A stretch of 64,000 nucleotides of DNA from Pavona decussata (Eukaryota): the NCBI GenBank assembly GCA_977016875.1, contig CDRNST010000197.1:496001-560000 (forward strand). Reading direction: 5' to 3'. How positions within the stretch are numbered: position 1 is the first letter of the stretch; each line of letters begins with the position of its first letter. The notes beneath the pieces are model-generated. The model was not told the origin of the DNA. It made no database searches and was given only the letters and a program-made list of their open reading frames with translations. Shown here piece after piece: positions 59,051 through 59,526 of this stretch. A program made the position numbers and the translations under genes.

Positions 59051-59431
59051 TCACGATCCTTGCTTTCCGTTGGTTGATACTACACTACAGTCTGTTAAGT
59101 CAGCATTCACGACTTGTAGCTCGGGCAAAACATTCATTTTGTCAAGTTCCATTTCTAAAATTAGCGATGTTAACGCATCGTCGTCCAGAATGACAGAGTC
59201 AAATCGCGATTCGTTTGAGCTGAAAAAGTCCATGCTTTGCGCCTCGAACTTCCCACTCCTGTGGATACAGTGTGGAATAGGGTATGCGTTGGAGTACGTG
59301 AAAATGCTTCCCTCGAAGGACCTGTGAGCAGAATTTCCACTTGGGGATGAAAATGGCACAGGACTTGGAATAGGCCTTGTAAACGACGGCGTCGTGGTAG
59401 TTACAGCAATGTGATTAAGCACCAAAGCCAT
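59051..59431 (-). CDS. CITED-like (CBP/p300-interacting transactivator) small intronless protein, 126 aa
   Basis: The ATG at 59431 is in strong context (ACGATGG). A Ser/Pro/Thr-rich low-complexity N-terminus precedes the acidic segment DSVILDDDALTSLILEMELDKMNVLPEL (59200-59117), which aligns without gaps to CITED2 CR2 [28 protein letters not shown] (13/28 identical, recalled sequence). Confidence 0.82.
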   Translation of the reverse strand: MALVLNHIAVTTTTPSFTRPIPSPVPFSSPSGNSAHRSFEGSIFTYSNAYPIPHCIHRSGKFEAQSMDFFSSNESRFDSVILDDDALTSLILEMELDKMNVLPELQVVNADLTDCSVVSTNGKQGS

Positions 59432-59489
59432 CGTCTGCGTCTTCAATTCTTGGTTTTCAAATGTCGTTGCACTCGGCCGCAGTCACAAC

Positions 59490-59526
59490 AGTGTTGATCG
59501 ACTCTAAATTCAAACTTCCTTTTATA
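59490..59526 (-). promoter_or_regulatory. TATA box and initiator of the CITED-like gene
   Basis: TATAAAAGG on the - strand (59526-59518), with a TCA initiator-like element about 30 nt downstream (59497-59495). The ATG follows about 65 nt later. Confidence 0.7.

Follow-up and report, generated by a model that had tools for sequence, protein, structure and literature searches.

The minus strand of the 64,000-nucleotide stretch of Pavona decussata DNA analyzed here (the window) carries a short single-exon gene (59054..59431) whose 126-aa product is, judged from its sequence, a new, divergent and miniature member of the CITED family that occurs in stony corals and related lineages. We consider it probable that this is a genuine and probably transcribed coral gene for a mostly disordered CITED protein, the C-terminal tail of which would bind the TAZ1 domain of CBP/p300. 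Annotation apparently lacks the gene; its named database copies are labelled just ‘hypothetical protein’, and some copies already bear a precomputed Pfam CITED tag while the gene itself has no name.

The gene, its constraint and its relatives

The sequence-only reading had proposed an intronless 126-aa ORF in a strong Kozak context, and both features stand. The frame opens with an ATG at 59431, its last codon ends at 59054 and a TGA stop occupies 59051-59053; a 131-aa ORF listed for the same frame starts at an upstream TTG. Assembled contigs of public runs are collinear across the gene and show no joints. The start codon has an A at -3 and a G at +4, and all five coral species share the same ACGATG. 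One copy of the gene was found in the coral genome (602 Mb, 1180 contigs). Candidate paralogues on contigs C132, C388 and C265 (E 0.016-0.34) were rejected as unrelated open frames or stop-containing sequences.

We determined dN/dS between the window and four genomic loci of other corals (L016, L022, L023 and L024). Pairwise values were 0.08-0.20 at a dS of about 0.3-1.8, around 1, which points to a genuine coral gene under purifying selection. Three blocks of the protein are conserved. The N-terminal block, residues 1-28 (59348..59431, minus strand), consists of a Thr-rich run followed by IPSP, lacks a Pfam match and has a dN of 0.091 versus a dS of 0.76. The middle block, residues 42-56 (59264..59308, minus strand), has the core YP-x-PHC and a dN of 0.024 versus a dS of 1.45. 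The third block, residues 78-115 (dN 0.048, dS 1.08), lies in the putative CBP/p300-binding, CR2-like region of residues 74-115 (59087..59212, minus strand), where the Pfam CITED and PDB profile matches discussed below also fall. The linkers between the three blocks have a dN of 0.29-0.43. AlphaFold2 placed the sole helix at residues 84-93, in the highest-pLDDT blocks (74-78) of a model with a mean pLDDT of 57.6, and the protein is predicted to be disordered apart from this helix.

A search of 5.8 billion proteins recovered 23 relatives at E ≤ 0.01 with alignment identities of 58-98%, and two of them are named, from the stony corals Desmophyllum pertusum and Oculina patagonica. The ORF is therefore conserved in related species, with stony-coral orthologues 58-98% identical and under purifying selection. 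A profile built from coral sequences only, run with no word index against 1.84 billion proteins, gave 12 matches, all cnidarian-type, including the remoter proteins P0025, P0026 (E 1.2e-19) and P0031, which are 111-147 aa long and share the three blocks. A second, word-indexed profile search (A2 profile) added the P0026 and P0031 clades, with P0050-P0055 at E 1e-28 to 1e-36, which have the three blocks as well and among which P0051-P0053 are closely related to P0026; there were no vertebrate proteins among the matches listed from its 8000 scored candidates. The similarity to vertebrate CITEDs amounts to about 22-37 bits, and such matches therefore cannot reach significance in libraries that large. 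The sequences of the three clades outside stony corals come from ENA, JGI and Logan contigs. In the resulting alignment of four clades and 19 sequences (A3), the invariant positions are T14, I21, S23, P24, Y50, P51, H54, C55, E93 and the LPEL motif.

Some matches had peculiarities of their own. The 555-aa protein P0024 was rejected as a homologue, its match being confined to seven copies of a YPIPHC-like motif. It is built from at least seven tandem units of about 60 aa, every one with F-x-TSPLYPIPHC, closely resembling the coral middle block FTYSNAYPIPHC, and may be a tandem repeat derived from the coral gene or sharing a motif with it. In P0028 and P0030 the coral protein is recognisable, but its Thr, Pro and Ser codons have become codons for Ile, Phe and Leu, the pattern expected of C-to-T converted (bisulfite) reads that were assembled and translated. 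If these two sequences are bisulfite-derived, the gene body would be largely unmethylated in those samples.

The C-terminal tail and the CITED family

The CITED likeness proposed from the letters of the window was borne out by profile search in part: Pfam CITED (PF04487) was the sole family matched by the window protein (E 7.6e-5), but the score of 23.3 bits lies below the Pfam gathering threshold of 27 bits. In this match, residues 74-107 are paired with positions 155-188 of the 210-position profile. Residues 1-73 gave no match to Pfam CITED positions 1-154, which represent the vertebrate N-terminal regions (CR1/CR3), and the alignment with vertebrate CITEDs extends over only some 35-40 residues. 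CITED was likewise the one Pfam family at E ≤ 0.01 for 20/22 orthologues, with a best coral value of 3.4e-6, and three relatives that have all three blocks in common scored above the cut-off of 27 bits (P0051, 36.1 bits; P0052, 32.5 bits; P0053, 31.1 bits). Structure matches of P0051 in the atlas were discarded, the model having a pLDDT of 0.31.

Searches in the other direction, from the coral sequences to proteins of known structure, agreed with the Pfam result. When the coral-only profile was compared with 177,635 PDB sequences, four human CITED2 chains ranked first, the best at E 0.0015. With the four-clade A3 profile, CITED2 chains were again the top four, human CITED2 reaching E 3.2e-8, 3.9e-7 and 5.5e-7, and the next unrelated match had an E of 0.07. 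Two of these chains are fusions of CITED2 and HIF-1alpha; no HIF CTAD alone and no other TAZ1 ligand was among the PDB matches of this profile. Language-model features point to chordate CITED clusters (0.91-0.92), the nearest being CITED1-type. These results argue that the coral tail is a CITED CR2-type domain, for which homology is much likelier than chance.

The CR2-like region holds, in order, an acidic run, an alphaA helix, LPEL and a phiC-like motif. The C-terminal 28 residues DSVILDDDALTSLILEMELDKMNVLPEL align to human CITED2 (PDB 1p4q) without a gap and with 13/28 identities up to LPEL, exactly as first reported. The predicted amphipathic alphaA helix comprises residues 82-96 (59144..59188, minus strand; core ALTSLILEMEL), as judged from the AlphaFold2 model and the alignment with CITED2 alphaA, where it pairs with L-x-SLV-x-E-x-GLD. 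The retention of LPEL is confirmed; the motif occupies residues 102-105 (59117..59128, minus strand), is invariant in 19/19 sequences of A3 and aligns to the LPEL of human CITED2. The sequence-only reading further held that the vertebrate residues after LPEL are replaced by QVVNADLTD. That string does follow LPEL, as residues 106-114 (59090..59116, minus strand), but it is not simply a replacement; it is a coral-conserved motif, alignable across clades, that pairs with vertebrate phiC. After LPEL the four clades follow a common pattern: +2 is hydrophobic, a short variable stretch comes next, and then an acidic residue or Asn, L or F, one of S, T or G, and finally D. The coral motif has retained V (+2) and D-L (+6 and +7) but no aromatic, and one clade, that of P0031, reads LPEL-HL-EFSDW. 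On this alignment a phiC-like region appears to be kept in corals, in a form less aromatic than in vertebrates.

Human CITED2 CR2, solved with the TAZ1/CH1 domain of p300/CBP (PDB 1p4q and 1r8u), has the same C-terminal order of acidic run, alphaA, LPEL and hydrophobic-acidic motif. Like the coral protein, human CITED2 is small, disordered outside the helix and encoded by a CDS in one exon. The two differ in the residues after LPEL, where W247, F253 and F255 of the human WLGQNEFDF align to Q, L and D of the coral motif, and in the Ser-Gly-rich junction of CITED2, which the coral protein lacks. Human CITED2 is 270 aa long, whereas the coral protein has 126 aa and its own lineage-specific Thr-rich/IPSP and YP-x-PHC blocks. 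The vertebrate paralogues CITED1 and CITED4, from another phylum, are likewise short and characterized by the C-terminal domain that they share with the coral protein, and neither shows detectable likeness to it outside CR2. CITED4 also lacks the Trp after LPEL and has a Phe there instead (PMC13286877). In the CITED2 tail, the TAZ1-binding motifs alphaA, LPEL and phiC are all needed for efficient one-way displacement of HIF-1alpha, and phiC matters for both affinity and the one-way character of the displacement (PMC8784115). The HIF-1alpha CTAD is itself a disordered TAZ1 ligand, and its LPQL occupies the same site as LPEL (PMC8784115); the coral CITED-like protein has no counterpart of its helices alphaB and alphaC or of its hydroxylated Asn.

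Promoter, transcription and surroundings of the gene

Two TATA boxes lie upstream of the gene, TATAAATA at 59550-59557 and TATAAAAG at 59519-59526, in agreement with the TATA box first described; TATAAA is retained at the first position in 4/5 coral species and at the second in 4/5. The initiator described with it did not hold up, as all that stands there is a generic CA dinucleotide such as chance alone would supply. Near this core promoter (59519..59557, minus strand), RNA-like contigs end at 59475, 59482 and 59537, just downstream of the TATA boxes. Further upstream, an alignment of five species at a synonymous divergence near 1 revealed conserved footprints (59607..59912, minus strand). 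They include a TGACCT half-site (identical in 5/5 species), GTAAATATTTTGGC, ATCAATAAAC and a 34-bp block with two AACAAT motifs. The same interval contains forkhead-like ATAAAC and GTAAATA; by consensus, AACAAT is SOX-like and TGACCT would be a nuclear-receptor half-site, and these factor assignments are suggested by motif consensus. Vertebrate CITED2 is a FOXO3 target, a relation that makes the forkhead-like sites upstream of the coral gene of interest. A CACGT, which is ACGTG on the opposite strand, lies at 59691..59695 (minus strand), 264 bp upstream of the ATG and in the same alignment column in 4/5 corals. The ACGTG core fits the RCGTG of a hypoxia response element and other bHLH or bZIP sites too, and is a lead only.

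The stretch occurs in 19 public runs. We took 14 of the 19 to be RNA, which is a guess, and each of these contains just 35-61% of the sampled words. We aligned contigs of four of the RNA-like runs, from four studies, to the gene; again, the RNA nature of the runs is guessed and not on record. Run X1 gave contigs at 58732-59377 and 59350-59439, run X10 at 59087-59475 and 59446-59482, run X2 at 59086-59537 and 57744-59115, and run X8 a single contig at 58227-60068. The contigs contain no joints, and the transcribed region therefore has no intron. Since the X8 contig crosses the promoter and the runs are not recorded as RNA, transcription of the coral CITED-like gene is likely, not proven. An AATAAA poly(A) signal lies about 300 nt past the stop (58751..58756, minus strand), and 19 nt beyond it, at 58732, lies the end of an RNA-like contig. 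Other RNA-like contigs extend past this signal to 58227 and 57744, and longer 3’ ends or read-through are possible. The contigs of two runs break exactly at 59087-59116. In run X10, a 1261-nt contig shares the 30 bases of 59087-59116 and then continues into unrelated sequence that gives an in-frame stop; this may reflect a branch in the assembly graph, an allelic difference or a chimeric contig.

Elsewhere, the window has Cys-loop ligand-gated ion channel exons or genes on the plus strand at 9538-10458, 31519-32340 and 45578-46678 (Neur_chan_memb, E 1e-42 to 1e-45). At the locus of the distant homologue P0059 (L015), Cys-loop receptor genes also lie downstream in convergent orientation, as in the window; the receptors are only 28% identical, and the shared neighbourhood is suggestive of synteny at most. 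The plus strand also carries a 282-aa ORF with an HSF-type DNA-binding domain (36214-37062; E 2.8e-8, 34.6 bits) and a 386-aa ORF with a DUF3504 match and a weak phage-integrase-type match (13121-14281), the latter presumably a tyrosine-recombinase mobile element of the Crypton or DIRS type.

CBP TAZ1, HIF-alpha and the proposed role of the tail

CBP is encoded on contig C93 of the coral genome, with an intron interrupting TAZ1 after GKTCQ; the exon that follows starts with VAHCASSRQIISHWKNC. A second copy of both TAZ1 exons is present in the same assembly at G000:C62:1846512-1847770 (L018 and L020); its second exon reads CPVR in place of the expected zinc-binding CPVC and has other changes, and it is probably a decaying partial duplicate of CBP. 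The HIF-alpha CTAD was found on contig C263 (43.5 bits), in a gene separate from the CITED-like one. ANAP with its Asn and the helix GEELLRAL are both preserved in it, and FPNI stands where vertebrates have LPQL.

By analogy with CITED2, the tail would fold onto TAZ1 (CH1) of the coral CBP/p300, filling the alphaA groove and the LP(Q/E)L site. It might then compete with other TAZ1 clients, the most obvious competitor being the coral HIF-alpha CTAD from the same genome, or bring CBP to proteins bound by the other two conserved blocks. We co-folded the coral protein with a database fragment, P0157:28-128, that stands in for the coral’s own TAZ1 and resembles it at about 86% identity over the first exon and at 30/35 residues of the second. 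The pair scored 0.49, compared to 0.01 for the best of three controls, with the runs agreeing in at least 80% of contacts and a partner pLDDT of at least 56. In calibration, the mark was reached by 51/78 solved complexes and 2/108 mismatched pairs. At scores of 0.60 or under, it was reached by only 5/78 solved complexes and by all four of the passing mismatches (of 180), and co-fold passes in this range were more often wrong than right. The CITED2-TAZ1 complex is also a solved structure, and the pass may therefore reflect memory. The co-fold lends weak support to TAZ1 binding by the coral tail and raises its odds only slightly. It seems fairly probable that the coral protein is a CR2 homologue acting at CBP TAZ1.

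Within this explanation, the protein might further be a HIF-induced feedback inhibitor that displaces coral HIF-alpha from CBP TAZ1, in which case the HIF-CITED-CBP loop would be older than bilaterians. The presence of a CITED-like gene, a CBP TAZ1 and a HIF-alpha CTAD in one genome is in keeping with such a role, a canonical LPEL opposite the FPNI of coral HIF-alpha could give the CITED-like protein an advantage at the site that both use, and ACGTG stands at the same aligned promoter position in 4/5 corals. However, ACGTG is a short and non-specific core, and vertebrate CITEDs act on many HIF-independent partners too. The phiC motif, which backs one-way displacement in vertebrates, is weakened in the coral protein, and the linker between alphaB and alphaC of coral HIF-alpha, hypothesised to be decisive for the switch, is shortened (10.1101/2025.06.06.658374). 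In that study, a human HIF-1alpha peptide with the coral linker bound TAZ1 less well (10.1101/2025.06.06.658374). We regard HIF-induced feedback as a minority prospect. A role as a HIF off-switch is plausible, although we would not expect it to be the outcome, and the full scenario, in which the switch predates the cnidarian-bilaterian split and a mini-CITED induced through ACGTG evicts an FPNI-decayed HIF-alpha to reset the nightly hypoxic response, we judge rather unlikely.

Convergence is possible for a disordered motif of 38 residues, and the coral protein could in principle be a small disordered activator of separate origin, in which an acidic helix and an LPEL arose anew for binding TAZ1; it would then act as a CITED does while standing outside the family. 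Short linear motifs in disordered regions do converge, and HIF-1alpha and CITED2, which share LP(Q/E)L in the absence of homology, set a precedent. The alignable stretch is confined to about 38 residues, and the remaining conserved blocks are absent from the Pfam CITED model. Independent origin would, however, have to account for three sub-motifs in the same order and spacing, for three relatives that exceed the curated Pfam cut-off, and for a profile that matches CITED2 at E 3e-8 and no HIF CTAD alone or other TAZ1 ligand. It would also have to produce the LPEL-HL-EFSDW kept in one clade, which is near the vertebrate LPELWLGQNEFDF. We therefore consider convergence improbable. It is more improbable again that the CR2 resemblance lacks functional meaning and that the protein acts through its Thr-rich/IPSP and YP-x-PHC blocks with no CBP binding: these blocks are at least as conserved as CR2 (dN 0.024 for the middle one) and have no known counterpart, and the co-fold score of 0.49 is weak, but CR2 is equally constrained (dN 0.048), LPEL is invariant in four clades and CITED is the only significant database similarity.

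A CITED-type gene in a coral contradicts statements in recent papers that the family is confined to vertebrates or absent from corals. The sequence-only reading was right that the family is usually described as vertebrate: a 2025 review has it as ‘present only in vertebrates’ (PMC12653289), and a 2025 preprint from the group that described the HIF-CITED2 switch delimits the CITED2-bearing group as vertebrates plus lancelet, with coral among the animals that ‘have no CITED2’ (10.1101/2025.06.06.658374). That preprint treats Orbicella faveolata as being without CITED2 and reads the divergent coral HIF linker accordingly (10.1101/2025.06.06.658374). Our literature searches on this family in corals and other cnidarians, Nematostella among them, and in amphioxus turned up no published description of a cnidarian or other non-chordate CITED.

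With CITED membership of the coral protein as the preferred reading, a CITED-type tail conserved in stony corals and three further clades would push the origin of this CBP/p300 ligand much earlier; the alternative would be a striking case of convergence. The coral protein is also a natural variant that retains LPEL and alphaA next to a weakened phiC, set opposite a HIF-alpha with a weakened LPQL, and as such it could serve to test which motifs make the switch one-way. For coral biology, the gene is a candidate regulator, and reef deoxygenation gives the hypoxia response of these animals practical interest.
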